A stretch of 64,000 nucleotides of DNA from the NCBI GenBank assembly GCA_024137785.1, contig JAHRHZ010000116.1, positions 62,001 to 126,000 of the forward strand, written 5' to 3'. Positions 3,816 through 63,317 of the stretch are shown here, one piece after another. Every line of letters begins with the position of its first letter. Position 1 is the first letter of the stretch. Position numbers and translations under genes: made by a program. The stretch is from Ginglymostoma cirratum (Eukaryota). The notes beneath the pieces are model-generated. The model did no database searches and was not told where the DNA came from. It saw only the letters and a list, made by a program, of their open reading frames with translations.

Positions 3816-4164
3816 TCCTCGTGGCGCATAGATAGGTAGAAGTGTCAGTAATTCTGGCGTTTCTCACAATCAGGGCGCTGAATTTGTAATCTCCATTGAT
3901 TGAAGCTGTGATTCTCTCATGCTGGTAAACCTCTGTTACGGGCATCACCAGAAGTTGTGGTGACTGATTTGGGAGCTGTCTGTACCAACGCACCATATTA
4001 AATGTAATGGTACAGGTGCAGTTCAGAGATAGAATTCCTGCTTCGCTAACAATCATCTGTGGAGGAAGTTGAATTACTTTATCTTTTCCAATCACCGCCA
4101 TGCGGATCAGAATGAAAAAAAGAGTAAGAGGACTCTGTGAATTTTTAACATGATCAGATTCCAT
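3816..4164 (-). CDS. TRAV/TRDV: TCR alpha/delta-locus V segment, open frame, apparently with leader and V in one exon
   Basis: MESDHVKNSQSPLTLFFILIRMAVIG-KDKVIQLP...LNC...WYRQ...DTSTYLCATR; both canonical Cys and Trp present; followed by a 23-RSS. Confidence 0.85.
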
Positions 4165-8041: not shown

Positions 8042-8567
8042 ATGGGAACTCGCCTTGTTTTCATTCTCTGTGTCTATTTAGCCTGTGAGTACTGATCACA
8101 GAAACCAAAATTGTATGGATTTAACATTGCGCTGCCCGAGTTTATCTGAAAAACAGTGACAGTTTGGCGTATAACCCTGTTTTCTGGTTCCCCTGTTTTG
8201 GCTTATAAACTTCTCTCTGTTTAATCTCCAGGTTCTTCAGCCAGTGAGTGACACAGGCCCTACAAGAGCAAGAGCGAGTGTAAATCTCTCCTCATCACCA
8301 GAGTTTTGTATAATTAGAGTTATAACTTAAAAACTGGATATTTGGTCAAACAAGCGCAGACTGCAGTGGATTGGAAGAGGATCTCTGGCAGTACGGAGAT
8401 TTTTGTGTCCACGAATAAAGTGCAAAATAGATTTTCCCTGAAAGTTCTGGATGTCAGTGCAGAAGAGGTTGCCACCTATTCCTGTAAGGTTCAGTACTAG
8501 TATCAAAGCATAATGTCAGAAAAGACACGGTGAAAGAGGTCCGAGTAAATTACATTGTACAAATAAG
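8042..8567 (+). pseudogene. NAR-TCR V (IgNAR-like V) pseudogene, cassette A, with leader exon
   Basis: Leader 8042-8084 MGTRLVFILCVYLA|gtgagt; acceptor ends 8231; exon reads KSLLIT(R)VLYN*SYNLKTGYLVKQAQTAVDWKRISGSTEIFVSTNKVQNRFSLKVLDVSAEEVATYSCKV. The first Cys position (AGA 8300) to second Cys (TGT 8483) is 61 codons, the VNAR spacing with no CDR2. Stops and frameshift present; degenerate RSS CACGGTG (8526) ... ACAAATAAG (8559), 26-nt spacer. Confidence 0.8.
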
Positions 8568-8855
8568 ATATTAATTCTCCGGCATAACAGCCAATTGTTG
8601 AATTGAAGATCCCTTCTCCAGAATTTGGTTTGATTTCTTTTAACTGTCCAGCAAGCAATTTTTTGATAACTATTTCTGCGTTTCTATGAAGCGAGTATCT
8701 GCTTCCCTACTCCTCCACTATTTGGTAAAAGTGAGATTAGCTTGTATCAAAGGAAACTTCGACAAATAGAATATTGGTTCTTTATCGACACCTCTTGAAT
8801 AATTCGAATGTTTAAGTAGCGAGCTGATGAATTCTCATTTCTTTCAGTATGCTGT

Positions 8856-8944
8856 GTTGCTTGTAGAGGTGGAATTGAGAGGAGCATTACTGCGTGACTA
8901 TAAATATGTAGATGGATCCAGAACGATGGCGACTGGTACAGCTT
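8856..8944 (+). pseudogene. NAR-TCR J segment with 23-RSS, cassette A (degenerate)
   Basis: nonamer GTTGCTTGT 8856-8864, 23-nt spacer, heptamer TACTGCG 8888-8894; coding DYKYVDGSRTMATGTA (degenerate G-x-G-T-x-V-T-V); phase-1 donor GTAAGT at 8945. Confidence 0.75.
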
Positions 8945-9099
8945 GTAAGTTAATCCGTACACCATTGTGTTGTAGACTATCTTGGTTGAATGTTCAGTTT
9001 ATTATTTTGACGTTTACTTGCAAAGAAACTAATGTTTTGGAGTAGATTTGTAGCTTAGGTTGTGAATGTTGAGGTTCGTTGACATGTTGAGCTCGTTTG

Positions 9100-9150
9100 T
9101 TGTTCCGCAGACGTTTCGTTACCATGCTGGGTAACATCATCAGTGCAGCC
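9100..9150 (-). ncRNA. Minimal hammerhead-ribozyme-like motif in a Penelope-type repeat fragment
   Basis: minus strand ctgca CTGATGA t gttacc cagcat ggtaac GAAAC GTC tgcgg: catalytic core, 6-bp stem II, palindromic ACGT stem III, GUC site, 5-bp stem I. Confidence 0.55.
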
Positions 9151-10859
9151 TCCGATAAAGCTTCGTTGTATTTTCCCGTCTGTTTTTTTAAAAGAAACTA
9201 ATACAAACATTGTAGAATTAAATGTCTTTGCTGCAGTGTCTGAATTGTTAGATTACTGGAGTCGAGTCCTGGTTTGCTCAGGTGAATGTATGTATAATAC
9301 CTGGCTCTTATTTTGGAATTGGCGGCTTCATTGCACCTGTGGCAGTATTAGTCGAGCTGATCAATATTGCAGTACCGTTAATACGGTGAACTCTTAATGA
9401 GTCCAGAGTGCTGACAGTCTGCACTCACTGTAGGAATTACTCGTGACTGAGGGAGCTCACTCTGTTGCTTCAGTCACAAGAGAAGGGCAGAGGTTGAAGT
9501 CTAAAAAAGATAACAGATTGGAAAATTTCAACAAAACCATCTACCCGACGAAAAATTTGGAAGCATCACTCAGCGAACATCAGATTTTTTTTCCTTTATT
9601 CATTCACAGACTGAGGGCATTACATTTATTGCCCATCCCTAATTACTCAGAAGGTAATTGAGAGTCAACCCCATTGCTGAGGGCCTGGAGTCACATGTAG
9701 GCTGGACCAGGTTAGGATGGAAGTTTCCTTCCCTAAAGGTCATCAGTGAACCAGATGAGTTTTTCCAACAATTGCCAATAGATTCATGGTCATCATTAGA
9801 TTCTTAATTCCATTTTTTCCCTTGAATTCAGGGAGGAGAACGGAATACACCAACACATTATGCTGGATGAGCAGTTTCAATTAGGTTTTGACTGGGCTTG
9901 GGCTTTGGAGTGTATGCACATGCAAAAATCAGTTGGGCCGAATGACCTATTCCTCGTCTTCAGATTTAATGCAAAGCTAAATGGATCTCCACTCACAGTG
10001 TTCATGAGGCAATAAGTCGACGCATTAATTGAAATTGAGGGCGATATGAATGGGAAACAACACGAGAAACAACGGAAACTGAACCCAATCGAGCACGAAG
10101 AGACTTTGGGTTGTCACGATTGAAAGAAAAGTAAAAGACACAAAGAAAAAGGAGAAAATAAAAAGAAACTAAATTGAAATATTTCACGTTAGAGGTGAGC
10201 AGACAAGAAGGGGATCTGATAGATCTGATCAGGAAAACAAGGTAGTAGATCAGAAATCGGGTATAATATCCTGGACAAAGTTAAACTGCAGAAATTATTG
10301 ACTTGGTCGTTGCTGATCAATCACTTTGTTTATTTTGGATCTTGCTGTGCATAGTAACGAAATACAATTGGGTCACTTTCGACACCTTTTTTTTTGGAAT
10401 TTGTCTCAATGAGTTGCAGACGTTTCCCCGACTTTGCCGTTCATCAGAATAAACAGAAACAGAAATGTGGCATCCATCACAGAATTACGCAGGATAGCAT
10501 TTTGCCCCTCGTTCAACTACTGTCCTCTTCAGCGTACTTGAATCCTCCCCATAGCCCTGCATTTTCTCCCTGTTTCAGCTGCAGTCATTATCCAGTTGAA
10601 AGTTGCTGTCCAGTAAGTTCCCACTGCCCGTTTTGGCTTTGCATTCCACATTGTAAGAAGACTATGTATAAAAGAAAATGTCACCTCATCTCCTCATTAA
10701 TCTATATTTCAATAAAAGAGAATAGATTCAAACTGATTATCAACAAAATTAATTAGCACAAAAATATAGAACAATTCCCGTGATTTACAATTTCTCCCGT
10801 GTAAAAAGTGGCTGAACAGTAACAATGTTCAACTTCGTCGGCACATTTCTTTCCCCTGG

Positions 10860-11190
10860 TACTCTGGACGCTGTTTCGACAAATCTCTGCTGCCGGTGGT
10901 AACTTCACTTTAAACTGAGTATTCAGGGTTAAGCAAATACACAGTTTGCTATTACTGTCAGTCCACAAGACAGGCTCCGAAACATCTGTTTGAACGGTAC
11001 ACTTCAAGAGAGCTGAATAAAAAAAATTGCCGGCGGGGACAAATTTCTGTTTCCATCTGCCCATTGGTGAAAATCGTTAGTTAATAATCTCTCAAATACA
11101 ACTATGTAACTTGGTTGTGTATTACTATTCATTGATTCGATGGCCAGCAGGCATAGTAATACAGAGCACGGAGATTGCTGTACAGAAAAT
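10860..11190 (+). pseudogene. Leaderless 'supporting' TCR-delta-type V pseudogene, cassette A
   Basis: YSGLSKYTVCYYCQSTRQAPKHLFERYTS...ISQIQLCNLVVYYY; paralogous to 34419-34764; RSS CATAGTA (11152) + 23 + ACAGAAAAT, spacer ATACAGAGCACGGA... shared with the cassette B copy. Confidence 0.75.
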
Positions 11191-11536
11191 GGCATGGTGG
11201 CTAATTGTTTAGCATAGCTTGCTCACAGCGCCAGGGACCTGAGCTCGATTCCATCCTCCGAGGAATATTCTTCCCGTGTCTGCGTCAGTTCCCTCTGCGC
11301 GCTCAGGCTTCCTCCAACAGTCCAAGGATGTGCAGATTATGAATATTGGCCATGCTAAATTGCCCATGGTTTCAATGAGTCCGTACATTATGTGGATTAG
11401 CACTGAAGAATGCAGGGTTACAGAGATCGGGTGGGGATGGGGTGTGGGTGTTGGTGAGTACATGGTTTTCAGAGAGTCGGTGTGACTCTCTGGTCCAAAT
11501 GGCCTGCTTCCGCACTGTAGCGATTGTATGATTCTA
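11191..11536 (+). mobile_element. HE1-like tRNA-derived SINE
   Basis: ggcatggtggc...cacagcgccagggacc...cagtccaaggatgtgcag...gctaaattgccc; same family at 22.6, 32.0 and 51.2 kb. Confidence 0.8.
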
Positions 11537-14930: not shown

Positions 14931-16968
14931 TCAATGTAATCAATGTGAATGTTCAGCGCACAGTAATACATTCCACTGTCATCCAGCTGTTATAGTGCCA
15001 AGGATAAGCTGAAGAAATGAGCTGATGCTTGTAGTGTTGAATAGTTTCGAGTTTCCATATTCTCCTGTTTCTGCCCATCTCCTCCAAAATTCTTTTTTCT
15101 TAAAATTACCATTGTCTCCCCTGTCCTTTGTTGACACCATAGCAGATCATATTGGCTGCTGACTGTGGAAAATGAGCAGGTCAGCAGCATACATTCTTTC
15201 TCCAAGCATAATACTGAAGACATTGATTGCTTAATGGTGTTGCAATGGTGCAGTCCTTTAAGAGTAAAGAAATAAAAATCAGAACAATAAAATGTTTAGG
15301 TAGCACAGACATCAGTAGTCGTTCTTTCTTTCCCTTTATCAGACAATCATAGAATGTATAGCACAGAACGAGGCCATTCAGCATCTTGGGCACGTGTTGT
15401 GCCTTTGGTAAAGTTACTGAATTATTGCGAAATCCCCATTGGTTCCTGATGGACTTGCAAATGCTTTCCTTTCCAGAAACTTTACTTTGACTGTTGTTTT
15501 CCTTTCCAGCATGTTTAGTTTGACAGTTGCTATTAAATCAGCGTCCACTACATTATAACGCAGGGCATTTCACTTCAAAACAGTCATTGATAAAAGCAAT
15601 GACTTCTCAATTTCCCTGAGGTTCGATTGAAAATGACTTCAAATCCAAACCTCTTCTCACCGAGTTTTTTCGACTAAATGCAATGAAATTGCATTGGTAA
15701 CATTTGATGAGTTGTTTCCCCTTTTGGGAGAGTCCAGGGCATTAGGAATTACTCTTAGAGTAAAGGATCGACCGATCTGAGACAGAGATGAGGAGGAATA
15801 TTCTCTCTCAGAAGACAGTAAATTGCGAATTCTTTACCACAGAGGCTGCGTCGTTAAGTTATTCAAGGCTGAGATAGACCAAGTTTTAATTCGTAAGTGT
15901 TTATGGAAAAGGCATTAAACTGGAATTCAGAATTATCAGATTAGATATAGTCTCGATGATTGCCTGAGTACATTTGATGGGCCGCATTGTCTATTTCTGG
16001 TACTGCAACTTAGAGTCTTGTACAATGCTTCTATTGATAAATTCAATAATTCAAAATGTTTCAAAATAAGTCTTATCCCACTCTGTCCATATTTGAATTT
16101 TTGCACCCATAAAATATCTTACAACACTGTTGCAACCCTCTCTACAATGCAAACGTATTTATTTTCTTTTGCCTCCCTTCTTTATTCAAACAATAATGTC
16201 TCAGAGTTTGGAAGTGGTATTTATCATCTATTGACTCAGCTGCCTCAATTTCTGCCCATACTGTACAAAGTACAAGTCAGAAAAGAGATTCGACGATTTC
16301 CACCTACCTGGACAATTGCAGCTCTCAAGAAATTAAATGCTGTTCAGGGCAATGCAGCCTATCCATTGACACCTCCTTCATAACCGTCAACATTAATTCT
16401 CTTCAGCACCAGCAAAGAGTGGTAGCCGTGTATGTTATTTAAACTATGCATTACATGAACGGACCTCCCATACAGAATACCTGTATCACCTAGTCGGCAA
16501 GGGCAGCACTTACATGCAAATGCCGTCAGCTGTATGTCCTGCTCAAAGCTACACATCAACCTGATTTGGATATATATCGCAATTTCCTCACTGTCACTGA
16601 GACAAAATCTTGGAGCACCATTTCAACAACACTGTGGTTATCAATGCATAGCAAGGACAGCAGAACTTCAAGAAGGCTGCTCAGTACCCTCTTCTCCAGA
16701 TGATAATGTGTAATAAAACTCTCCCTATGCGTGGACGAATAAATCACAAATTATTTCATGGAGTTATAATTGTATTCATTTTTTTGCTGCCCATAAGCCT
16801 GCAAAATTCGAGGAATCGTCCACGCCCTCCTCAAAATTGTTCACCATTCTCCTAACTGTTTACTATGTTCCAAGACTACTACAATCTGCAAACTGGGAAC
16901 CCAGCGTCCAGGTATCTACGTTGCTACATCGTTATATTAACTGGATAATGATTTATTGTATGATTTCT

Positions 16969-17109
16969 NNNNNNNNNNNNNNNNNNNNNNNNNNNNNNNN
17001 NNNNNNNNNNNNNNNNNNNNNNNNNNNNNNNNNNNNNNNNNNNNNNNNNNNNNNNNNNNNNNNNNNNNNNNNNNNNNNNNNNNNNNNNNNNNNNNNNNNN
17101 NNNNNNNNN
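16969..17109. other. Assembly gap (N run)
   Basis: 141 N. Confidence 1.
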
Positions 17110-22625: not shown

Positions 22626-22943
22626 TCTTAGAACGAATCCTTCGCAGTGTGGAAACAGGCCCTTTGGCCCAACGGCCCAACAAGTCCACACAGAACCTTA
22701 GAGCACCCCACACAAACCCACCTAACCTACACCTCCCTGAACACTATGGGCAATTTAGCAAGGCCAATCCACCTTGGCTCCACATCTTTGGACTGTGGGA
22801 GGAAACCGGAGTGAACCCACGCAGACGCGGGGAGAATGTACAAACTCCACACAGACAGACAGACGCCCGAGGCTGGAACCGAACCCGGGTCCCTGGTGTT
22901 GTGAAGCAGCAGGGCTAACCACTGAGCCACCGCGCTGCCCACA
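22626..22943 (-). mobile_element. HE1-like SINE
   Basis: reverse complement gcagcgcggtggctcagtggttagc...gtctgtgtggagtttgtacattctccccgcgtctgcgtggg. Confidence 0.85.
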
Positions 22944-28057: not shown

Positions 28058-31031
28058 TGCAATTTTGAGACTGTATAATTTGTATCACAATTGGTTGTAT
28101 CAAAATTATCTAAAGATGTTTTAAAGTAGTTGCATTAAAGATGCACGAGAGCAGTCTTCATAGATGCATAAACATATTTGCCCAAGTTAGTGCCCTTATA
28201 CCTAAAGCGACAACACTATACAGTTAAACTTAGTATGAGCATGTCTATTTCAGCACAGTCACACTGTCGACGTATCCAGTTCAGGACGTGCACAATTTCA
28301 ATGAAAATCCATACAATGCAGATGTACAATTTCACAGCAGTGTAGTTTTGTCGAACCTACACCAGATCAACTCCAGCAAGGGCCCATACTGTTTGCAGCA
28401 CGTTGACTTAAGCTTGGCTTAAAATCAATATGGACACATCCAAACTGTTACTTTTTATGACAGACAAATATTTGGACAACAACTTCATCCCTTGAACGAG
28501 TTGAACTACAGTCTCACGCTTTACGAGGATTGATATAAAACCATCATACTAAGGAGGAGCTGGTTATTTTATCAAATTAATTGCGAAGATAATTAGCATA
28601 TTTTATGTGGTTTGGCTTAGAATGGTCAGACATAAAATAAGGTAGCTGATACGAGTAAGAGCCTCGGCCAATGGTCCCCATGGGTCCCCGCGGTAGGATC
28701 AACCTTGGACACCTTAGTGAGCATCCCTTACAAATATTTCACAAATTTTGTATTTAATACTGCCATATATGGTGTCAAATAGCGGGATGTTCTAAAGCCA
28801 CATTCTGTCTGTGCAATGCCTGTGTTGGTAAAAAAAAAGTGTATCGAAATCGATTGTAATGTCTAAAGCACCATTCAAAATATATGTAATTGCGCGTGAT
28901 CCTTTATAGGAGCTTGCTGTACCTGGACTATGTGAAGAAAACTTCAGAAAAGTTCAAAAACAAGAACAATCTATTAAACTTTCTCCCTGGATCAAAAATA
29001 AGCACTACTGCCTCAATATTCCGGAACTCAGAACTCAGTCTATCATGCTCAGCATCAGAATACAGAGCGCCTTTCTATCATGGGTCATCACACACACATG
29101 CTGGTGACACCTACGCAATTGACTGCAATAAGGCACATCATAACGAGAATTCTCCGTTTGGCATATCTTCCCGAGTTTCTGTCCGAGCAAAGAACACTCT
29201 TCCGTACAATTGCAGACTGAGGAAGCAATGGTCTAGTCGCATTATTGGAGAACTGTTAAGCCAACGACCTGGATAACGTTCTGGGGACCCAGGATCGAAA
29301 CCTTCCATGGCCGATGGGGAAGTTTGAATTTAATAAAATAATTAACACAGAATCTAATGATAACCATTAGTCAATTGTCAGAAAATACATCTGGTTCACT
29401 TATATCCTTTGGGGAAGGAACCTGCCATCCCTTCCTGGTCTGACCTACATGTGACTCTAGACCCACAGCCATGTGTTTGACTCTAAACTGCCCTCTGGAC
29501 AGTTAGAGCTGCACAATAAATGTTGCCTGGTCAGCGACGTCCTCATCTCATTAATGAATAATAATAATAAAAAAATGAAAGCTCATAAGCTGGTTGCAAC
29601 TGTCCAAGCTGCACTTCGCTTACCCTCTCCACAATGACTTTCTCAATCTACTTACTGTCTATCAATCACTGGGCGTCCCTCATACAGGAAGATTCTTGAG
29701 CAAGTTTTAGCAGTCCTTTTTGGATCAAGGCATGAAGTAGGGAAAAAAAAGGTCGTCAAATGTAGGGGTGATACAGTATGGAGCTGCTAGAACTCAGGAA
29801 AGTTTCTGCTCCTCTGATGTTGCCTGGCCTACTGTATTCTTCGAGTTCTCTACTGCTTTATTTCTGACACCAGAGTCTGCAGTTCTCGCTATCGCTATCA
29901 ATAATGAGAAGCTCCATCTGGAAAATGGCAGCTATCATGGCGAGAGTGGTCCTTGGTAAATGCAAAACTCCTTGGTACACTTGTGCAGAGACACTAACAA
30001 TGCTGCATACTATTGATGAGTGCCCCATCGCCAGTTTTAGTGTTGGAATCATCATCTTAAGCTCTGAAAACAAGTTTTTTTTGCTTGGCTGCAGGCCTTT
30101 TTATTTGGTGAACAAATGAGCACAATATTAAGGCGACAGAAAGCTTACTGGCAGATCAGTCAATGCAGCTAAAAGCGATGTGTGCAATCTTATATGGCAC
30201 CCATTAAGATTCTCAACTGATTGCCCTGCAGCAGAACATACAAGAAAACATTGTCAATTGAAATCTTTAAAACAAACAATCAATTGCTGCATCGCTCGAA
30301 GCTTCGAGTTCAATATCGAGCATTTCAGCAAAATGTCTGCATATTCAGCAGCACAATTCTCCAGTACTGTTCCCGGAATGTTGTCAGAACCTCAAGCTGT
30401 TCCGGTGCCCAGTACCTTCATTCGTTACTCCATGTGATTTGGGCCAGATAGAATCAGTAGAAACCCACTATTAATGATGATTAATTCACCTCCAACGAAG
30501 TGCACCCACCAGCTGATCTATGCTTGGAGCCAATACCTAACAACATGGAAGTGCACGCATTCTGGAGGCAGGTATTAGTTGATATTATAGCATGTAGTGT
30601 TATGTTGTTGTGGGGACTGCTCATTGGTTTATTCTATTATTCAATAACAGCATGACTGATCTGCAGTGCATCAAACCTGCATCAAGTGAGACCTATAAAC
30701 AACTTCAAGTGTCCTGCTAAATCACACATGCAGACATTCCCTGCACATCAGACTACCATGGGAAGGGATATTTTGATCGGGTTCATTGTTCACATGATTG
30801 GGCAGGAAGTTGCATGATCTCTCTTTAAACCCGTCCGTGTTCACATTACTCAAAGCCTGAGATACTAGAATGCGACATCCATTAATGACCTCCCATTAGC
30901 TGTCCCGTAGAGATCACCTCAATCGTTTCGAGTGTTTCAGTCTAGTTCTGAGGTCGGGCCTCTCAGAGAAGTTCTCAGCTGCTGCCCTCAACTGCCCTTC
31001 ATATTAACTATCAGCTCTAGGCTGCAGAAAG

Positions 31032-31548
31032 ATAGAATTCTTTGCTATTGTAACCCAGTGCATCTGGATACCCCGTGAGTACCAATGAAGTAAATGGACA
31101 TTGCTTTGATTCAATGAAATGTTACCCACGATCATGCCATTTGCGAACATAGGCACCGGGTTAACATCGTTTGTTTTTGTGCTGTTGCTCTGATTGTCCA
31201 TTAAACTCTCTGTGTTTAATTTCCAGGCTCTTTCAGTGAGTGACAAAAACTGCCACAATGGTGACCAGGACGGCGGGTCAGTCTGTTATCATCACCTGTG
31301 TTTACTATTGTCATAATTGGGTCACTATTTCAAAGATGCTTATCTCCTCAGGCAGATCCAGATGTTGACAAATTGGGAACAGATTTCCAGTGGAGGGAGA
31401 TTTGTTGTGAGGAAGAATAGAAAGAAAAGACAGTTTCACTGGAGATCCGGGATGTAAGAACTGAAGGCACTGCCATCTATTACTGTAAAGCATATTACTA
31501 CTGCAGCAGCTAGAGTGATGGGCCAATACATTGTGCAAAACAAAAACA
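31032..31548 (+). pseudogene. NAR-TCR V (IgNAR-like V) pseudogene, cassette B, with leader exon
   Basis: Leader 31032-31074 (start mutated to ATA; 14 codons + 1 nt, donor GTGAGT as in cassette A); acceptor ends 31226; VTKTATMVTRTAGQSVIITCVYYCHN/GHYFKDAYLLRQIQMLTNWEQISSGGRFVVRKNRKKRQF/SLEIRDVRTEGTAIYYCKAYYYCSS. EQISSGGRFV matches the IgNAR ESISKGGRYV motif; RSS TAGAGTG (31511) + 22 + ACAAAAACA. Confidence 0.85.
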
Positions 31549-31864
31549 AACACTGCAGATTTTTACAGAAAGAATCAGGGAAGTACAGTTAATTTATTCA
31601 TAAAAACACATAATTCTGCATCTCGACATACCATCCCTCACATTGTAATTTCCAAAGCTATGTTATTATTGGTGTTAACATCTAAAATTTCAAAATGCTG
31701 AGTTTGTTGATGTTTTTTTTTCTTGTAATTGGAGTCTGTAAATGTTGGGAATGATGAACGCAATTAGGAGTTCAGAACATATCGGGACCCAATTCTCAGA
31801 GCCAGGACGTGACGACACGGGCTCCGCGGTATAGTTATTGTCTCCATATCTCACTAATGTCTGA

Positions 31865-31937
31865 GGTTTTACCGTTAATTTGAAACATTGTGTTCAATTT
31901 TCGGGATTCCACAGTGGTTGGGATCTGAATAAATACC
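31865..31937 (+). other. D segment flanked by two 12-spacer RSSs (NAR-TCR D), cassette B
   Basis: GGTTTTACC + 12 + CATTGTG (31886-31892) | TTCAATTTTCGGGATTC (31893-31909) | CACAGTG (31910-31916) + 12 + ATAAATACC. Confidence 0.85.
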
Positions 31938-31994
31938 ACAGTGCAATTGAAAATAAAAGTGCTGGTTAGTATCCCGGAATGTAAAATGTATTTA

Positions 31995-32272
31995 TTAGAA
32001 TCCCTACAGCGTGGAAACAGGCCCTTCGGCCCAACAAATCCACACTGACCCTTGGAGCATCCCACCCAGAACCATCTCGCTATCACCCACAAACCCCTGA
32101 ACACTATCAGTAATTTAGTATGGCCAATCCACCTAGCCTGTGGGAGGAAACCCACGCAGCCACGGGGAGAATGGGAAAACTCCACACAGACAGTCACCAG
32201 AGACTGGAATCAAACCTGGATCCCTGGTGCTGTGAGGCTGCAGCGCCAACCACCGAGCCACCATGCCACCCC
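31995..32272 (-). mobile_element. HE1-like SINE inserted between D and J of cassette B
   Basis: same family as 22626-22943. Confidence 0.8.
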
Positions 32273-32546
32273 GAGATATGCTCAATATACTCAGTACATT
32301 TTCCTGCAATGTCCCTTTTTTCTCTGTTACCGTTCTGTGATATTTTTGCCCCTTTCCGTGATGCGCTCATCAACTACCCGTTTTCCTGCGTCCATTTGCT
32401 AGTATCTCAGAGTCTCATGAATAACAGTTTGAACCAACACGATATGAGAAAATTTGAATGTTGTTATTTGTTAGAAACACTCCCAAAAATTACAAGCAGA
32501 ACTAAATGTTTTGTAACATGTGGCTATCAGATTAAATGGTAACAGT

Positions 32547-32636
32547 GGTTCGTGTCTGGGGTGACTGAGAGCAGCGTCACGGTATTGGTAATATGATATT
32601 GTGGATGGACCTGGGATCTTGGTGACGTCACGACAG
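32547..32636 (+). pseudogene. NAR-TCR J segment, cassette B (degenerate)
   Basis: nonamer GGTTCGTGT 32547-32555, 22-nt spacer homologous to the cassette A J spacer, heptamer CACGGTA; coding YDIVDGPGILVTSR; donor CAG|GTAAGT at 32637. Confidence 0.75.
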
Positions 32637-34418
32637 GTAAGTGACTCCAAATGCTCCATGTCACAGACTGTCTCAATTAATATTCACTGTCAGTATATTT
32701 TTGAGACCTGTGTCATTTCAATCTTACTGTGGGAAGTCAGGGAGGACATGGAAGGACTGGTTGAGTTGTATTCCAATCTTCAATGGCAAACGAAGGAGGA
32801 AATCAAAGGAAACCTGACTCCAACATGGGAGACTGACAAAAACAAAGAAAGCACATGGCATCCGGAGTAACTTGTCAACTTGGATCCTTGTTGGTATGGT
32901 AACAGACAGAGTGTGGTAATAGGAGATTATTTGCGTGAGTCGAAGCCGGTTTCCAATAGCTTACCGCAAATATTAGTGCCTGGGTCCCGACTAGTGATGC
33001 AGAAGGCCTTAAGTTTTAGGAAAATATCGATGGGTTATTCAGATCGGCAGATCAATGGCAGATAGAATCTAAAACTGATAATTATATTTAAGGGAATGGA
33101 ATATGCCATCCTTACATGGGCTGGTCCACCTGTGACTCCGGGCACACAGGAATGTGTTTGACTCATTTCTGGAATCTGGGAAAATAGTTATGGACTAGAA
33201 ATATTAACTTTTTCAGCAACTCCCACATCCCGTAATTTTGTTTTTAACGTAAGGAGATGCAGTTTGGAAGAAGTAACAAGACAATGGAGTTTGCAAGAAT
33301 GGCAGGACGCTAAGGAGTTGAGAGGAACAGAGGTATCTTGGGATGCTTGCTCACAGATCCCTAAAGGTCGAGGGGCCAATGAAAAGGTTGGTAAAGAAAG
33401 CATACAATGCACTTATTTTTATTAGTCTTGAAATAGACTATAAAAGTAGGGAGGTTACGTTGGAGCTGTACAAGGCTTTGGTTAGTCCACAACTGTGACT
33501 TTCTCCTTTAGAGAGTCAGCACATGCATGGCGGATCTTTTGGACTTCTGTTCTGTGATCGTTCTATCATTGTGTTCCATGAATATTTGACCACTGTCAAC
33601 TTGAATCAATTTGCACTCAGTTGAATCTTTATGTGGGCTGTGATACAACAAATGTAATATGTACATGGGAGAACTACGAACTGCAAGTTCCTCTCCAAGG
33701 GAGTCACCATCCCGACATGAAATATGATTCCGTTCTTCCATTGTCGCTGAATCAAACCCTGGAAATGACTCTCTAACGGCATTTTGGACGGACTAGCACA
33801 AAATGATTGGAGTAGTTCAAGAAAACAACTCACCATCACCTATGAAAGGGAAACTAGGAATGGGAGATGAGCTCAGATTTGGACAGTGGCGTCCAGATCT
33901 CAAAAATGAATAAAGACAGAAGCACATGCAATGGCGTTGCTCTCCATCAACTAATTCTGGAATTGATAGTCTCAGTGAAAAAAGAATTAATTGTTAAAAT
34001 ATTTCCAATATGTGTGTTTTACAAAGTGGTATGTTTGCAGATATCCAACAGAATTTACCTATGGCCTATCTCAAGGTATTTTAAAATTGCGAACACTCCT
34101 TTTTTCATTTCCACCTAATCCCAGAATATTAAATGGTTCATAACGTGCTCTCAATTTCCCTTTGAGAAATACTCTTGAGTCATCTTCTTCCACAGAATCT
34201 TCCATTCTGGCATTTGATCCTGATCAAAGTAATATGCTTTCTCTTTTCGACAGAAAGCAAATCCCAACATCTCCATGCTGTGTTTTTTTCTTAATTCGAC
34301 TGAAGACATTTCAAACCTGCTCCAAATGAAGAAATACGCCTTAAAATGAGAGCCGCTCACACCAATGACAAGTTTTCTAAATATGCCATTGCAAAACAGA
34401 CTTCTTTTCATCCCACAG

Positions 34419-34764
34419 AATCTTGTTCAGTGTTGTAGCAGAATCCACATTTTAAAACCTCCACTACCTCTGAAATGTTACTTTACCTGCCAATAGTCAG
34501 GGTTCTGTCAGCGTGCAGTTTAAAGGTACAGTCAGTCCCCAAGTCAGGCTCTGAATACCTGCTTCAGAGGTACACTTCAGCCGAGGAGAATAATGAACAC
34601 GGTGCCAGAGTAAGGCTGTCTGCATCCATCAATCCTGTTGTGAAATTCAGCAAGTTAAAGATGTATAAACTACAGCATATTGACTCTGTTGTGTGTTACT
34701 GAGCACCGAGTCGGCGCTCAGCGCACACAGTGATACAGAGCACGGACGTATCTGTACAAACACC
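34419..34764 (+). pseudogene. Leaderless 'supporting' TCR-delta-type V pseudogene, cassette B
   Basis: acceptor ttcttttcatcccacag; SCSVL*QNP...NVTL/CQ*SGFCQRAV*RYSQSPSQAL/EYLLQRYTSAEENNEHGARVRLSASINPVVKFSKLKMYKLQHIDSVVCY*; near-consensus RSS CACAGTG (34726) + 23 + ACAAACACC; no leader found between J and this exon. Confidence 0.85.
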
Positions 34765-37700
34765 TGTACATGATGACGATTACAGATACTGTCATATAGA
34801 GCCTGGAGAGAGCTGTACAAAACCTGACTATAACGCTTCGGACTGGTGGACTCTGGGGCACTAGCAAACTGTATAAACATTTTTTTTCCTGAATTTGCTT
34901 GTTCACATTTTATAGAGGAAACACATTCATCTTAGGATTAATTCTGTATTCCTAATGGTTGTGCCAATTTGCAATTTACCAACTCGTTACTGTGACATGA
35001 TTCAATGAGGAATGCAGTCTGTTACATTTTACATAGGTGTATATGAATTCAACAACAAATTTCAGTCTTTAGTTTGATAAACAATAGAGCGTGTCAAGTA
35101 TGTGGATTTATGGGGAAGCAGCAAACAAATTAGGTTATGCCTTCCAGAAGTGGGAACATGTGCAATAAAATTATTCCGTGTTGCCCGATTCTATGATTAC
35201 AAATTTATATTTCTATTTTCCTTGTAGAAAGAACAAACCTAAATTAATTAGCATTCGAACATCAACAAGGGAAACCAAACATTCAAAAAAAACGCAATTC
35301 TGAGGGTAAACCAACTGTGTTCCATTACTGCCCATGGAAAAATCAAATAGAAAGCGTAGGGTTAGTGACACCAAATATGCAATATAAGACTTTTATGTCA
35401 GTTTTACATATTACAGGAATTCCTGCATATCTTTCATTCTATTTGACTCTTTCCTTTGACTTTTTTTTGAGTTTTCATTTATTTTAATTTTCATATGAGG
35501 TTTAATTTTATTGCAACACTTACTTTGCATTGCTTGTGGTGTGATCATTGTGGGAACATATCTTAACGGTTCACATCTGTCCAAAGTATACAGTTTCCAT
35601 TGTGGTTTTACTGTTACTCACTGGGAACTGCCTGTTCCGCGTCTCTGACAATTTTAATTGCCTGGAACCCATCGGCTAATTCTCTCCCGTGTTCTCTGAG
35701 CGTACCTTTGCCTGAATTTCATATTAAATCAACTTTCGGATTTGGGACAGACTAAGCGGTCTATGACTGGGAAGCACATGTTTCCTTTCCACGAGAGCCA
35801 ATCTATTTACAGTGAACTATTGTCTTCAGGGCCCTCTTTCTCTCTACTCCTTTCTTCCTCCTACATGTTTCTTCTTCATTCACTCCACATCTTTGTATCT
35901 TTGTGCATACTTTGTCAGCATTTTTCCGTACACACAACGCTAGACAAATCCGATTCACTCAAGTACCCATTCTCTGTCCGCTCAAAGTGATGACAAGCAT
36001 CGTCAACAGAGCTATTAACCAGCTCATGCAAAAAAAAAAACTGACTGATACGAATTTTGGGTTACGCCACATCCTCTCAGCTGCTGACTGCATAAAGCCT
36101 TGGTCCAAACAAGAATTAAAGAGCTGAACTCCAGAAGTGAATTGAGAATGGCTATAGTTGACATCAAGATGGCACTTAAACGAATATAATATCAATGATA
36201 CCGACACAACCTTCAAATGTTACAGTGATACCTGGTAGTAAAAGAGATGATTGTTGATTTCGAAAGCCATTCATTTCAGCCGTAGAACACTGCGCAGGAA
36301 TTCATCAGGATAGTCCTCACTGATGAAACAAATTCTGCTGTTTCTTTAGGGATATTCACTCCATTATATTGTGAGAAATGTAGAATCTGTTTGATGATTA
36401 AACAAAGTTAAGCACCATTACTGAGTTCTTAGTTACTCAAACAGTCAATCTTGTTTGCAACAAGCTTTGGACGATATTTAGGTTTTCTATGTTAATTGAA
36501 AATAGGATTCGCGCCACGTGCGCACCTGGAAGTGACTATTGCTAACAAGAGAGAATTTAAACATTGCCCCTTAATATTCAATGGCATTACTGTAACTGAA
36601 TCCACAATAATCAGCATCTCGAGTTAGCACTGACCAGAAATTTTAATAGATCAGCCAAGTAAATGCAACACACAGGTAGCCAAGAAAATACAATGGCTTC
36701 AAGAGCAGGTCAAAGTGTCGGAATTATGTGATGATTAACTTATTCCTTTTCCTCCCAGTGTCTGCTCATCATTCATAATTTACAAGCATAAATCATTAAT
36801 CTTTTTATCAAACACAGTTGGCTGATGAGTCCAGTTACAACAGGATTCAAGAAGCTGTACAACATGAGGATTCCATGTGATTGGTTCCCATCTGCTATCT
36901 TCAATATGCATTAAAATCACCACTGATGCACGTTAGGAGCAGTTTGAGCAATATGCAAAATTTCTTCCACGAACTCACGAAGGTCCCCCGAACTGTATCT
37001 TCCCGTCCTGCAAACTCCACCATTTAGAAGAATTCGGGCAGCTATAAATGAGAACACAAACACCTGCAATTTCCCCTTCAAATCGCAGATCATCCTGATT
37101 TTAAAAAAAATCCGCAATTTCTTCAGTGTCGCTGCATCAGAAATGTTGACACTCTGCTCCTAACAGCGCTTTGGATGTCCAATGGACTTCGTCAAATCAA
37201 AAGGGCAGCTCACCTAACTGTCTTCCGCATGGAGGCAATTGCTGACCTAATCAGTAACGGCCACGACCCAATGATCAATAATATAATCTTCTGGTTTAGG
37301 CTATGCAATTATTTATACTTCATTTGACTTTGTCTTGTTACTGTCTCACCAAAAGTTATATTTTGTTACGTTACTCTAATTTCTGTCCCTGTTTATATTA
37401 GAAGAGAACTTACTATGGTTATGTTATGTTTCCCGTCGTTATCGTTGAGAGGTTAGCCCTTGTGTCTTAAATCGGTGTGTGTCTAACTTGCATTGTGTGG
37501 GAACGTTCTCTGTTGCATAACTATAACCTCTGTTGTGCAAGGACATTCAATACTATGTGATGGCCACTGCCACCATCATCTTCAATTGCTCTAATGTAAT
37601 CACAATGTTCTGTGTTGGCCTCATGTCAACGATAATTCTTCATTGTTTCAGAGAAGCAACGTCCCACAGCAGTAAGCTGAAGTACAAACATGCCATATTC

Positions 37701-40742: not shown

Positions 40743-41206
40743 TCGAACTGATTTGGAGAATCCACAAATGTACAATGCCGCGTCACTCAACTGAAGATAA
40801 GTGATCGTTAAAACAAATGTTTTTGTTGTTGTGTTTATCTCAGAAGAGAAGCGAGTTCCAATATTTTTCGCTTTTCCCCGACTGCCACTCGCACTACTCC
40901 ACACTATCATCTCCAGGGGAGCATCAGGAGACTTTCGGTACCAGTACAGATCATACGATCTTACTGTTGTTGAATAGCTGCATTGCGTTGTGAAAGTTTG
41001 ACCTGCTTTCAAGGTTATTTCTGACCAAGACTGAGACACGGTATCTTCCTGAGACAAACCTATTTGAAAGATTGAAAGCATAATTCAGAACATAACGATG
41101 AAATTCTCAGAAACCTGTTTCTTAAACATTTTTAATAAAACAAGACAGAAATATTACCGAATGTCATGTAGGTGAGAGCAGTTAAAAGGCTGAATTTGTA
41201 AAGCAT
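40743..41206 (-). CDS. TRAV/TRDV: TCR V segment (delta-like), intact: leader exon 41206-41158, V exon 41059-40743
   Basis: MLYKFSLLTALTYMTFG|LSQEDTVSQ...QCSY...LYWYRK...LQLSDAALYICGFSKSVR; canonical GT-AG phase-1 intron. Confidence 0.92.
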
Positions 41207-50000: not shown

Positions 50001-51630
50001 TTCCATCTTTCATTATAAACTTCTGAAGTTCAAAAGCTTTCACTTTATTCCACACTTCTCTCTCTTCATCTCATTCTTCTGTTGGAGCCATAATTTCCTT
50101 TTTGGTCTTGCTCTGACAGGGCTATTCTTTAATTTATTTTTTCTCTGCTTTTAATCGTCATTCAAACTATTTCATTTTTCCCCCATTTTTTCTGACTGGG
50201 CTATGTTGTTTTATTTTTCTTTTTTCTTTCTTTTTCCCCATGCCGTTGCCTCTAACTGAAACTGCTTCATTTGCAATTTAATTTTAGGTATTTTCAGTTG
50301 ATATGACTGAATTCCTAGCATCGTAAATGCTAAGTTATTATTACAATTATCTCCTTTTTCCTAATAGACACAAATAACATTAACGTCAGCATACTTTTCA
50401 ATTCCGAAGGTTTTGCATGGCTCTCGTTCTGTAAACTACCCAAAGTGACTTCTTCCACCTCCAATAAACTCTGAGCAACTGAAAGAGCCTTCATTAAACA
50501 AAACACGCACTGGTTAAACCAAGAAAATGTAACACAGGGAAGAAAATATCCAACAATCTACACTCGCTATGTGTGAGACCAAGGATCCTCAACCCAATGT
50601 GGAATTGGAGATTTTGATTTCGTCAAGAGCCCACGGTTTGTTATAGAGCAGAACAAACCCCTATCGTGTAAATCAAGGAGATAGCCTTGGCATTAACGTT
50701 TATATTATTTAAAGACAATTGCAAGGTGTTGTGTTCCAGTTGCAATTTGATTCGTTACACTACTTGCCCTTACTCAGAACACTTTGCTCTTACCTTCGAG
50801 GTAAAATGCAAACAGAAATAACGAAAAATTCATGTAACATTAATTCTACTGGAAAACTTAAAATATTAATAGATTATTTAACAGCTAAACTGCAACTTCC
50901 CATACAGTATCAGAGCACTAACCAGGCCTTAACAAAGGGAAATTCAGTGAAGTAAACTGGTCTCACTTGCGATTCTGGCAGTAGCGAGAGAAAAAAAAAG
51001 GTAGAGAGAAAACTGCTATGATATGTAATAACGTTTCAGGTCAACTTTAACACTCAAAAACTACTCAACGCAAAACTAACACTCTGGTTCTGTGGTATTC
51101 TGACCCCACCAGTGCACGCTGCTACTATTGTTCCAACAGTTAAACAAAAACTTATCCAATGTTGTTCAAAATAGGACAGCACAATGGCTCACAGTGCCAG
51201 GAATCCGATTTCGATTCCACCATTGGGCAACTGTCTGTGTGGCGTTTGCATATTTTCTCCACGTCTGCATGGGTTTCTGCTGGGTGCTCCGGTTTCCTCC
51301 CACAGTCCAAAAATGTGTAGGTTAGGTAGAATGGCCATAATAAATTGCCTTTAGTGTCCAAAGATGTGTAAATTAGTTGGATTAGACATTGGAATTGGAG
51401 GATTAGAGGGTAAGGGTGGGCGAATGTGTCTAGGTGGGATGCTTTTCGGAGCGGTGGCTTGGATTTGTTGGGCCGAATCGCCTGTTTCCAATGGGATTCT
51501 ATGATAACCCGGGACCTCAAAAGCCGTTTACGCTGTTTGTTTGAACTAGACAGTTCTGAGACTCAGTCTCAAAATCACCTCTTCAAAAATAAAGGACAGA
51601 TTATGCCTCTTAAAGTCACTGCAGCGTCAC
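47050..51630 (-). mobile_element. Two tandem decayed Gypsy-type LTR-gag units (Gmr1/SCAN-like gag), the left one with an integrase remnant
   Basis: paralogous gag starts (ALSFTKSF..EEVT at ~48340; ALSVAQSL..EEVT at ~50488); PAFDNKGIETFFSKFEKVAK; integrase KTKRGSKYLLTIIDM...AYHP; paired LTR-like blocks ~48510-49105 and ~50640-51630. Confidence 0.65.
51172..51505 (+). mobile_element. HE1-like SINE nested in an LTR-like block
   Basis: gggtttctgctgggtgctccggtttcctcccacagtccaaa. Confidence 0.8.
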
Positions 51631-55430: not shown

Positions 55431-55967
55431 ATGAGGAAATTTTCATGCCGTTCCTCATCATCGTATTCATTCTGAGTAAGTATGTTCTTCTCAGAAAAAA
55501 AAAATGTGCCGATTGTTACGATATGAATGTTATTGTTTGTCGATGAGATGGTGCCAATTATGTAGACCAATATGAGTCTGACGCTATTGCCATTTTAACG
55601 TTGCTTCATATATTAGAATGGAGCCACCAGAATGCAGTGGAACAGCGGTTGGGTAAAATATTGGTCGAAGATGAAAAGAACATCGCCATTACCTGTAACT
55701 TGAAGAACAGCAGCTCTAACGATTATGCAAACTGGTACAGTCAGCGTCCAATGCAGTATCCAGAGTTCATGCTTCAGCTTATTGGGATGAGTGTGCACAA
55801 GAATACTGGCATCAGTGATCGATTCTCTTCGAAAAAAAACTGGCAAGATCATCGAACTAACAATCAGCAACATCCTCAACTCTGACAGTGCAGTCTATCT
55901 CTGTGCCCTGCAGTATGCTTCAGTATATTACAGTGAAAGTATTTCTGTCCGAGTCGATCATGATCAG
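55431..55967 (+). pseudogene. TCR V pseudogene (homopolymer frameshifts, defective RSS)
   Basis: leader MRKF/MPFLIIVFIL|gtaagt (55431-55475); exon from 55617 WSHQNAVEQ...ITCNLK...NWYSQ...RFSSKK/TGKIIELTISNILNSDSAVYLCALQ; heptamer TACAGTG 55929 with poor nonamer. Confidence 0.85.
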
Positions 55968-58020: not shown

Positions 58021-58059
58021 AGTTATTGTACAAGGCTTTTACTCGTTTCTATCACTGTG
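58021..58059 (-). other. 23-spacer RSS
   Basis: CACAGTG + 23 + ACAATAACT. Confidence 0.92.
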
Positions 58060-59145
58060 AGGCTGATTGCACAGTAATAGACCATTGTGTCAGACAATTG
58101 CAGGTCTGAGATGGTCAATTGATACAACTTGTCTTTCTGCTGTACTACATCAGAAAACCGGGTCCGAGCAAAATCCGCCTTCAATTCAGCACTGCCAGTC
58201 GTGTGCCTCCGGACTGTGAACTCTGGCTGTCTGTCTGGGTACTGACGATACCAGAACAAGTAATAACCATCGTCAGTGTAGGTACAGGTTAACGTGATAT
58301 TGCCTCCCTCCATCTGCTTTAGCGAAAGATCCTGCTGAGTAACAGAAACGGCATCACTCAAATCTGGAACACAAAGTTAGAGAAAGCAGATAACAAAGAT
58401 TACATATTTGAGCAAAATGAACGAATTGTAGAAATTCTTGATCTTGCCTAAAACTAGACAGAATTTAAAGCAGGTAGAGCTTGTTCAGATCGTTAGGCGC
58501 ACGCCTGTGTATATAACAACTACAAGCATCCTTCTTATTTCTTCCGATCGTTCTACTAGCAAATCACTCAATCCCTTTCTTCCTCTTTTCTGCTTTTGGA
58601 TGCGTCTTTGTTGTTTCGTACAAATACATCCTGTGCCTACGAAAAACACATCCTTCATGTTCTCCAGTTTTTTTTTTCAAACTCTGAAATCCTCGTTGTA
58701 TCATTTTGTATCGTTTGAACTTGTTTATTTACATTTATGTATCTGAAACCCCCTCCAAGTGGAATATCTCACACCGTGACTGGAAGAAAATATCTTTTCA
58801 CTGTTGTAAAGACATCAGTCCGGATACCCGTTAGTCGTCTCTTCAGTGGAGAAAACAACCCTAGCCTACTCTTTTTTTGTCAGTTACGAAATCTAAATTC
58901 CAGCGCTAAATCCATAAACTATTTTTTTTCCTGTTGCGCTTGACATCTCTTCAATCTTTGTGTAAAATAGTGACTAGACTTGCACACAATTCGAAAGTGT
59001 TCTCTGATCCAGCTCTCGTGCCTGTATAACATTTGTAATCTCTTTCTCAAATATATTCCTCCAGCCATTAAACACTGTTCAAAGCTATAAACACCTTACC
59101 AATAGTAGAAGTCACCCAGGCCAGACAGAGAAAGCACAGCCACAT
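58060..59145 (-). CDS. TRAV/TRDV: TCR V segment, intact: leader exon 59145-59100, 736-nt intron, V exon 58363-58060
   Basis: MWLCFLCLAWVTSTI|DLSDAVSVTQ...LTCTY...LFWYRQYP...LQLSDTMVYYCAIS; donor GTAAGG, acceptor ttgtgttccag. Confidence 0.9.
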
Positions 59146-60275: not shown

Positions 60276-60314
60276 GGTTTTTGTACATGCCAAAAGATTG
60301 TGCGTATCAATGTG
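60276..60314 (-). other. 23-spacer RSS
   Basis: CACATTG + 23 + ACAAAAACC (perfect nonamer). Confidence 0.93.
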
Positions 60315-60754
60315 GAACTCAGAGCACAGCGGTAGACGGCAGAGTCGGAGACATCAACGTTGGTGATATTTAAGTTCACTGTTTTCTTGTTTTTGTCCAA
60401 ATTAGCAGAGAACCGATCAGGAAAATCTGTAGACCTGTCCCCTTGCTGCTCTTTGTATCTGTGCAGTAAATATCTTGGAAATTTCCCAGGAGACTGGATG
60501 TACCAAAAGAGAGTTTCTCCAGCGAATTCTGCTGTTGTGTAATTACAGTTCAGTATTATATTATGGCCTTCCTCAGCGATCCATTCTGGTGGATCCTGGA
60601 AAACGGAATCTTGGCCATTCGTTCCTGCAACAAATACATGCACCGTGTTAAAAATCTGCATACGTAAATCTGATCAAACACACAATGGCGATTTTATCTC
60701 TGACTTACCAAGCACCGCGGCCATGATTATCAGTAAGGAATACAGGAAACACAT
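60315..60754 (-). CDS. TRAV/TRDV: TCR V segment, intact: leader exon 60754-60709, V exon 60624-60315
   Basis: MCFLYSLLIIMAAVLG|TNGQDSVFQDP...LNCNY...LFWYIQSP...DSAVYRCALS. Confidence 0.93.
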
Positions 60755-62647: not shown

Positions 62648-63317
62648 ATGAGGAACTGTCTCCCACTGGGTCTTGCAATTATCTCATTTCTAGGGCAGTG
62701 ATTCTTTTCCAGAAAAAAAAAATCTCCATTGTCCCCGAACCGTATGTTTGCAACCCTGGTATTATTACTTGTAAATCACTGACAGTAATGATTATAATTT
62801 TGATTACTGGTGTTACTTAATGTTAGAATGGTGTCAGAAAGATACAGTGGAACAGCTGCTTCCTGAAATGGCATTTAAAAGACAGAAGTACTTTTCTACA
62901 AATCTGAAACTTGAAGACAAGTGATGCAAGTTGTGCTCAGTGATACAGCTAGTACCCAGTGCAGCATCCGCAGTATGTACCTTGATTGGGGAGTTGATAA
63001 ACAGGAACTCTACCTTCAGTTGATTTCTAAGGATGAATCACTGGACCCGAAACATTGACTTTCATTTCTATTCACAGATGCTGTCAGACCCATGGAGTTT
63101 ATCCAGCAATTATTATTTTAGTTTCTGCTTTCCAGCTTCTGCAGTTATTTTTCAAGTTCTTATGCGAACTTTTGTGAGCTATCCTCTGCAACATTTAATA
63201 AAACTATGATGATTACCAAATTAACCATCAACAAGGCCCTCTTTTCTGACTCTGCCGTGTGTTTCTGAGCCATGTGCCCCACACTGATTCAGAGATGACA
63301 GATTCCATATAAACCCC
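62648..63317 (+). pseudogene. TCR V pseudogene (same family as 55431), interrupted by a Penelope-like repeat (~63024-63160)
   Basis: leader MRNCLPLGLAIISFL with mutated donor; WCQKDTVEQLLP...*NLKTSDASCAQ*YS*YPVQHPQY; KLTINKALFSDSAVCF*; RSS CACACTG (63280) ... ATAAACCCC. Confidence 0.8.

Follow-up and report, generated by a model that had tools for sequence, protein, structure and literature searches.

Does a row of receptor segments that holds two variable (V) exons and a single leader belong to one unit, and could such a unit still work? The question is raised by positions 31032 to 34764 of a 64,000-nucleotide (nt) stretch of Ginglymostoma cirratum DNA (assembly GCA_024137785.1, contig JAHRHZ010000116.1, forward strand, positions 62,001 to 126,000), the whole of which is hereafter called the window. 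The original prediction, made from the letters alone, took this region for a dead cassette of the NAR-TCR system, i.e., a leader, an IgNAR-like V, a diversity (D) segment, a joining (J) segment and then a T cell receptor (TCR) V lacking a leader. According to three sources, NAR-TCR is a doubly rearranging TCR delta chain described in nurse shark by Criscitiello, Saltis and Flajnik in 2006 (PMC1845163, PMC5931798, PMC12227049). Our analysis shows that the region is, with very high probability, a germline NAR-TCR cassette, probably lying in the V array of a cartilaginous-fish TCR alpha/delta locus, and decayed to a pseudogene. It is thus of a known kind, described in 2006, and is one more dead copy of it, a NAR-TCR member by descent and a relic as a gene.

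The cassette was read over positions 30800-35000 and translated in three frames, and all the coordinates originally assigned to its parts were recovered on re-reading. Its layout, the homology of each part, spacers compatible with 12/23 pairing, a splice donor and a splice acceptor are directly visible at 31032-34764. Lesions were called by alignment to shark protein models and to a second cassette of the same window (8042-11190). The V pieces were searched separately and never as a joined, frame-corrected model; a joined reading, with X at breaks and stops, served for the tree only.

Parts of the cassette from leader to supporting V

All parts lie on the plus strand. The first is a probable relic of the NAR V leader exon (31032-31074, 43 nt, phase 1), with a GTGAGT donor directly behind it at 31075. 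The relic stands where a leader had been predicted and at a suitable distance from the V exon, though with ATA in place of the ATG start. The length and phase of this relic are those of the ATG leader of the second cassette (8042-8084), the sequence likeness being only loose, and the shark models start with MG..L..C..P. After an intron of 152 nt, the acceptor TTTCCAG precedes a V exon of NAR-TCR type (31227-31510), a pseudogene recognized by tblastn, PDB matches, the tree and the distance between its two conserved cysteines. It is read in three frame pieces, 31240-31317 (VTKTATMVTRTAGQSVIITCVYYCHN), 31320-31418 (GHYFKDAYLLRQIQMLTNWEQISSGGRFVVRKN) and 31421-31510 (KEKTVSLEIRDVRTEGTAIYYCKAYYYCSS), and its translation contains the motif EQISSGGRFV on which the prediction had drawn. 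The first cysteine (Cys1, TGT at 31297) and the second (Cys2, TGT at 31484) are 187 nt apart, hence ~62 codons, as compared with 59-65 codons in intact models of the NAR V type and 73 in the TCR V gene at 60.3 kb; the figures of 62 and 73 given previously were both correct.

The NAR V exon is interrupted by a TGA stop (31237-31239) and by two 1-nt frameshifts, one at ~31315-31322 in complementarity-determining region 1 (CDR1) and one in an A/G run at 31419-31423. Compared with the protein models, its 5' end is seemingly ~4 nt short, and therefore would not fit the phase of the leader. The missing tryptophan of the WYRK motif, by contrast, does not count as damage: the corresponding stretch reads YLLRQ here, YLVKQ in the second cassette and FF[KR]Q in 26 of 33 models, and absence of this residue is a hallmark of the NAR-TCR V (PMC1845163). 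The recombination signal of the exon (31511-31548), placed by homology, is disabled. It consists of a heptamer TAGAGTG, from which CAC is gone, a 22-nt spacer and the nonamer ACAAAAACA. In intact models the heptamer is CACAGTG and is read through as '..THSD..', where the V at 31.2 kb reads '*SD'. When the middle piece of the exon was compared with PDB, shark VNARs came out best (seven of the nine listed matches, with weak E-values), and their alignment ran uninterrupted through the region where other V domains carry CDR2. A search for homologous proteins with the middle piece (46 codons) returned no candidate, a blank made uninformative by the length limits and the word index of the search, and Pfam gave only sub-threshold V-set matches for the V pieces, because these are too short and too damaged.

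The D segment with both its signals occupies 31865-31937. The 17-nt D itself (31893-31909) is preceded by the nonamer GGTTTTACC (31865-31873), a 12-nt spacer and the heptamer CATTGTG (31886-31892), and followed by CACAGTG (31910-31916), 12 nt and the nonamer ATAAATACC (31929-31937). In a scan for elements with a double 12-spacer signal, this D was the only one in the window, and none was found in 100 Markov-random sequences of 64 kb (both strands). The predicted 17-nt D with 12-spacer signals on either side is therefore confirmed and is unique in the window. A further perfect CACAGTG (31937-31943) overlaps the last base of the 3' nonamer; no nonamer fitting it was found 12 or 23 nt further on, and it may be either a chance occurrence or the trace of a lost second D.

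Between D and J lies an element foreign to the original cassette, a high-copy interspersed repeat of 318 nt (31998-32315), with further copies in the window at 22635-22931 and 51188-51490. In the DNA runs of a related organism the depth over this repeat reaches 1e5-1e6, which makes it a very high-copy interspersed repeat. The contigs of that organism do not carry it: position 31997 is there joined to 32316 with 39 other letters between. Since the repeat is missing from these collinear contigs, its presence between D and J is explained by a lineage-specific insertion. Rfam matched no family over 30500-35500, this repeat included.

The J signal (32547-32584) is formed by the nonamer GGTTCGTGT (32547-32555), a 22-nt spacer and the heptamer CACGGTA (32578-32584), and is weakened by the change of its coding-side GTG to GTA. 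The NAR-type J that follows (32585-32636) reads W*YDIVDGPGILVT.., with a TAA stop at 32589-32591. It is 1 nt shorter ahead of its donor than the J of the second cassette, and ends in CAG followed by the donor GTAAGT, whose GT starts at 32637; a J with a 22-nt spacer and this donor had been predicted, and both are found at 32547-32637. Its equivalents are ..NWKYDYAEGSGTVMTVTAD.. in the shark models and DGAGTVLTVN in the VNARs of PDB. A 12/23 layout is thus present, with a 22-nt spacer at V, 12 nt on each side of D and 22 nt at J. As the heptamers of V and J are both mutated, V-D-J joining is not expected.

The J donor opens an intron of 1782 nt (32637-34418) that contains repeat fragments, high depth being also seen at 33032-33531 and 33657-33781, and no leader exon. 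The next coding homology after the donor at 32636/32637 is a leaderless supporting V exon of TCR-delta type (34419-34725), a pseudogene identified by tblastn, the tree and motif counts. Its acceptor CCCACAG ends at 34418, ~1.8 kb past J, and its start at 34419 matches by homology the 'D/E-S-S-S-L-V-S-K-N-P-P' start of the second V of the models. A scan of the 1.8 kb upstream of 34419 revealed no plausible leader exon, so that the search for a dedicated leader, whose discovery would have spoken against the prediction, came back empty. By contrast, the V at 60.3 kb carries MCFLYSLLIIMAAVL and a GTAAGT donor ~100 nt upstream of its exon. In the supporting V, stops are found at 34437-34439 (TAG), 34494-34496 (TAG, at the tyrosine after Cys1), 34521-34523 (TAA, at the tryptophan) and 34700-34702 (TGA, at Cys2), with frameshifts at ~34475 and ~34551. 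Cys1 (TGC, 34488) is retained, as is the CDR1 cysteine (SGFCQ), which is present in 27 of 33 models. The exon is followed, as predicted, by a 23-spacer signal (34726-34764) made of CACAGTG (34726-34732), 23 nt and ACAAACACC (34756-34764), agreeing with the consensus at 7/7 and 8/9 positions, respectively. In tblastn, this V is 56% identical to model P0008 over 62 amino acids and 45% identical to P0013 over 99 amino acids, the latter alignment extending through the signal. No PDB entry was matched by the piece 34553-34699 at E-values up to 1.

Homologous shark models and family membership

With the 60-codon open piece of the NAR V of the second cassette as query, 1.84 billion representative proteins were searched by HMMER. 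All the matches that aligned as a single stretch were shark gene models of ~230-340 residues (E down to 5e-15), from Heterodontus, Hemiscyllium, Scyliorhinus, Cetorhinus, Rhincodon and Chiloscyllium, the remaining ones being generic proteins with multiple immunoglobulin (Ig) domains, e.g., obscurin-like and sidekick. In a single frame, these models contain a leader, a NAR-type V, a J and, directly after it, a second V. Their NAR V reads …ECQSLTITCVF…FFRQT…WERISSGGRFVVSVNKAEKTFSLEIRDVRVEDTATYYCKA, their J …DGSGTVVTVTAD, and their second V SSLVSKNPPLQTSAAGDTVTL.CEYSGFCQYTVHWYRQSPGQAPEYLLQRHTSGEENKENAAGGRISASI…LSDSAVYYCA. A further search brought the number of models with this order to ~60, from at least 12 elasmobranch species; XP_060678048.1 (Hemiscyllium), XP_038644744.1 (Scyliorhinus), XP_078392284.1 (Cetorhinus) and XP_048475041.1 (Rhincodon) are examples, 41-76% identical to pieces of the cassette. 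The models (P0006-P0090) bear names such as 'uncharacterized protein', 'immunoglobulin gamma-1 heavy chain-like', 'T cell receptor alpha chain MC.7.G5-like', 'Ig heavy chain Mem5-like' or 'Down syndrome cell adhesion molecule-like', the family having been missed by automatic naming.

When the NAR part of the models was aligned to the window by tblastn, only 31210-31570 (frames 1, 3, 2) and 8267-8509 were hit. Their second V matched best at 34418-34849 and 10917-11191, and the ordinary V genes of the window were weaker. The first V of a Chiloscyllium relative matched VNAR structures in PDB over its full length (E 3e-18); VNARs were the sole full-length matches, while heavy-chain V (VH) structures aligned over framework 3 only. 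Then, a maximum-likelihood tree of 76 V domains was built, in which the sequences from the window carry X at each break. The first V of each cassette in the window is placed within the NAR-TCR V clade (Shimodaira-Hasegawa-like approximate likelihood ratio test, SH-aLRT, 99; stem 1.29), and the second V of each within the supporting-V clade (support 95). The window's four ordinary V genes, like two VH-like V domains (P0009), lie outside both clades. The prediction would have suffered if the V at 31.2 kb had joined ordinary TCR V or VH sequences; it is instead in the NAR clade, at SH-aLRT 99, in a tree that was assembled without IgNAR V. The end branches of the cassette V domains are long, 0.47 and 0.65 as compared with a median of 0.089. 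An N-terminal V of VH lineage, as in VH-delta/TAILV or TCR mu, was considered and rejected, the starred stem of the NAR clade separating it from the VH-like V of P0009. Taken together, the ~60 shark and ray models and the two clades bear out the NAR-TCR layout that had been proposed.

These results also weigh on the nearest rival explanation, according to which the region is the relic of an IgNAR cluster, with its V, three D, J and constant exons, beside an unrelated TCR V pseudogene. In IgNAR clusters, 12/12 signals flank the last D and the signal of the J is of the 23 type, an arrangement that is heavy-chain-like, as in shark Ig clusters. The D and J signals of the cassette agree with it, as do a NAR-type V that matches VNAR structures and a VNAR-like J. 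However, there is one D instead of three, and after the J donor comes a leaderless V of a dedicated clade, with no constant exons. The V-J-V order occurs again at 8042-11190 and, in other species, in the ~60 models. The cassette has TCR V genes as neighbours, and a V without the WYRK tryptophan is in the NAR-TCR state (PMC1845163). An IgNAR origin is therefore very improbable.

Several observations nevertheless count against a NAR-TCR cassette. Codon 31276-31278 of the a-b loop encodes glycine (GGT), a position held by cysteine in 29 of 33 models. This looks like a loss, because the related organism has TGT there and the second cassette keeps the cysteine (ECKS); as the residue is lost in a dead copy, membership is a matter of descent, not of function. 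Judged by consensus, the signals of V and J are weak, and they were placed by homology with intact relatives. No TCR constant region and no delta D or J was found in the 64-kb window, so that we infer the 'delta' nature of the supporting V. No protein named NAR-TCR or IgNAR was returned by the two model searches, and the tree, as mentioned, lacks IgNAR V; the assignment to the named family is thus based on the published diagnostic features and on the architecture, not on a labelled sequence.

Decay, the second cassette and the V array

The claim that this member of the system is dead was supported, and the list of lesions turned out longer than the one first given. More than 12 independent lesions are present, mostly substitutions: ATG to ATA, five stops, Cys2 to TGA, and the heptamer changes CAC to TAG and GTG to GTA. 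Four frameshifts are distributed over the two V exons, and stops occur in all three coding parts, i.e., the NAR V, the J and the supporting V. The sole parts that look intact are the D, with both its signals, and the 23-spacer signal of the supporting V.

Contigs of the related organism, obtained from four DNA studies, are collinear with positions 31038-34764 at ~93% identity, including V, D, J, intron and second V. The arrangement is therefore not an assembly artefact, and predates the separation of the two organisms. Among the sequencing runs searched, none of RNA and none from the source organism itself carried the stretch, the only match being a word share of ~6% in the relative. The comparison base by base concerns mostly positions up to 31713, with most later differences and most insertions and deletions falling outside it. 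Within this scope, the relative is less damaged in three telling places: with C at 31237 its codon is CGA and not the TGA stop, with T at 31276 it has TGT and hence the a-b loop cysteine, and with C at 31511 its heptamer is CAGAGTG, which is still without CAC. The cassette and its relative, through the a-b loop cysteine, the CGA/TGA difference and the repeat insertion, offer a small dated example of the decay of a cassette.

The same findings bear on the proposal that the cassette is functional, its stops and frameshifts being errors of a long-read assembly. Two of the frameshifts do lie in short A/G-rich runs prone to long-read errors (31419-31423 and the 3' end of J). Against this stand the number and independence of the lesions, which are mostly substitutions, the 318-nt repeat inserted between D and J, and the long end branches in the tree, and this proposal is hardly credible.

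A second NAR-TCR cassette, dead and more diverged, lies at 8042-11190 on the plus strand, with the same layout of leader, V, J and supporting V. Its ATG leader (8042-8084) is intact. Its NAR V comprises the 60-codon open piece (8318-8497) used as a query above, for which a VNAR is the best single-domain match in PDB; the a-b loop cysteine is kept, Cys1 is changed to Arg, and a stop lies in CDR1. No D was recognisable in this cassette (alignment score 23, for a null mean of 25). The J, at ~8910-8946, reads DGSRTMATGTA and is followed by GTAAGT, and its signal, GTTGCTTGT-23-TACTGCG, occupies the same relative place as that of the first cassette. The supporting V is decayed, with the signal CATAGTA-23-ACAGAAAAT. 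In the tree, the Hemiscyllium and Rhincodon models that group with the first V of this cassette are also those that group with its second V, a pattern expected of a V pair duplicated as a unit.

A TGA is found at the same codon in both cassettes (31237-31239 and ~8248-8250), close to where the V exon begins and just ahead of GTGACA. It was considered as a sign of a duplication after death, an idea that was dropped, the relative having CGA at this place. Parallel CpG decay and a shared ancestral lesion are equally likely origins of this stop.

The idea that separate V, D-like and J-like fragments lie side by side by chance, with no common origin as a unit, draws on an array rich in V relics of both orientations and on the abundance of weak signal-like sites, but is no more credible than the assembly-error proposal, given that order, strand and spacing are repeated in the second cassette and in the contigs of the related organism, that the V pair of the second cassette groups with the same two genera of models, and that the D is unique in the window, far beyond chance.

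Around the two cassettes, the minus strand carries four ordinary TCR V genes that are intact and have leaders and 23-spacer signals (3817-4086, 40743-41048, 58053-58355 and 60305-60613), as well as a V pseudogene (14942-15241); two dead V relics (55679-55910 and ~63200-63280) lie on the plus strand. A run of 141 N at 16969-17109 corresponds to an assembly gap or a masked stretch. All the V elements of the plus strand, i.e., the two cassettes and the two relics, are dead, and the four intact V genes are all on the minus strand, for which the chance among nine elements is ~0.04 (hand count). It is conceivable, though rather unlikely, that NAR-TCR cassettes are generally oriented opposite to the ordinary V genes of the array, or that the plus-strand block is an inverted segment decaying as a whole. 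If the opposed orientation were true, rearrangement of the supporting V to the delta D and J would proceed by inversion, as a locus-wide design rule; in the literature examined, no statement of such a rule for NAR-TCR cassettes was found.

The biological weight of a dead cassette is small, and its interest is to some extent one of annotation. NAR-TCR cassettes escape gene finding based on open reading frames, and intact ones are misfiled in at least 12 elasmobranch RefSeq genomes.

Comparison with known receptor systems

The mode of operation of a working cassette is established for NAR-TCR and provides a framework for reading the present copy. RAG would join the NAR V (23-type), the D (12/12) and the J (23-type) into a single exon, and the leaderless supporting delta V, with its 23-spacer signal, would be joined separately to a delta D and J. 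The transcript would begin at the NAR leader, and splicing would lead from the NAR J donor to the acceptor with which the supporting V opens, so that this V could do without a leader. A further splice would connect the delta J to the delta constant region, and the product would be a delta chain of three domains whose antibody-like tip is unpaired. For a cassette of the layout seen at 31032-34764, we infer splicing and double rearrangement of this kind. The present copy, with its lesions and the repeat between D and J, is incapable of any of these steps.

The prediction had noted that the class is known from nurse shark. It is indeed present there, and is not confined to this species, NAR-TCR being reported in all cartilaginous fishes (PMC1845163, PMC3149040). 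Venkatesh et al. (2007) gave as hallmarks of the first V a leader, an a-b loop cysteine and the absence of the WYRK tryptophan, and of the supporting V the absence of a leader and a CDR1 cysteine (PMC1845163); the shark models display this set of hallmarks. NARTCR V segments are also drawn on recent maps of the elasmobranch region that holds the TCR alpha/delta and Ig heavy-chain genes (PMC12227049). The cassette shares with NAR-TCR a NAR-type V without the WYRK tryptophan, a D and a J of its own, a donor after J, a leaderless supporting V with a CDR1 cysteine and a 23-spacer signal, TCR V genes as neighbours and duplication of the V pair. It differs in being dead, in the glycine of its a-b loop and in the repeat between its D and J. 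The RefSeq models follow the same layout as the cassette, reading leader, NAR V, J and supporting V in one frame; they are open reading frames whereas the cassette is broken.

With IgNAR and its VNAR domains, the cassette has in common a short V without the CDR2 strands, the motifs 'ISxGGRF/Y' and 'FSLxIxDLxxEDxxTYxCKA', and a J of the form DGxGTxxTV. Unlike IgNAR, which is organized as V-D1-D2-D3-J-C, it has one D, no tryptophan at the WYRK position and a TCR-type V after its J, and its setting is an array of TCR V genes. In marsupials and monotremes, TCR mu is likewise a three-domain chain in which an unpaired antibody-like V stands on a supporting V; its first V is related to VH and the likeness is regarded as convergent (PMC3457774, PMC2275272), whereas the first V of the cassette is of the NAR type.

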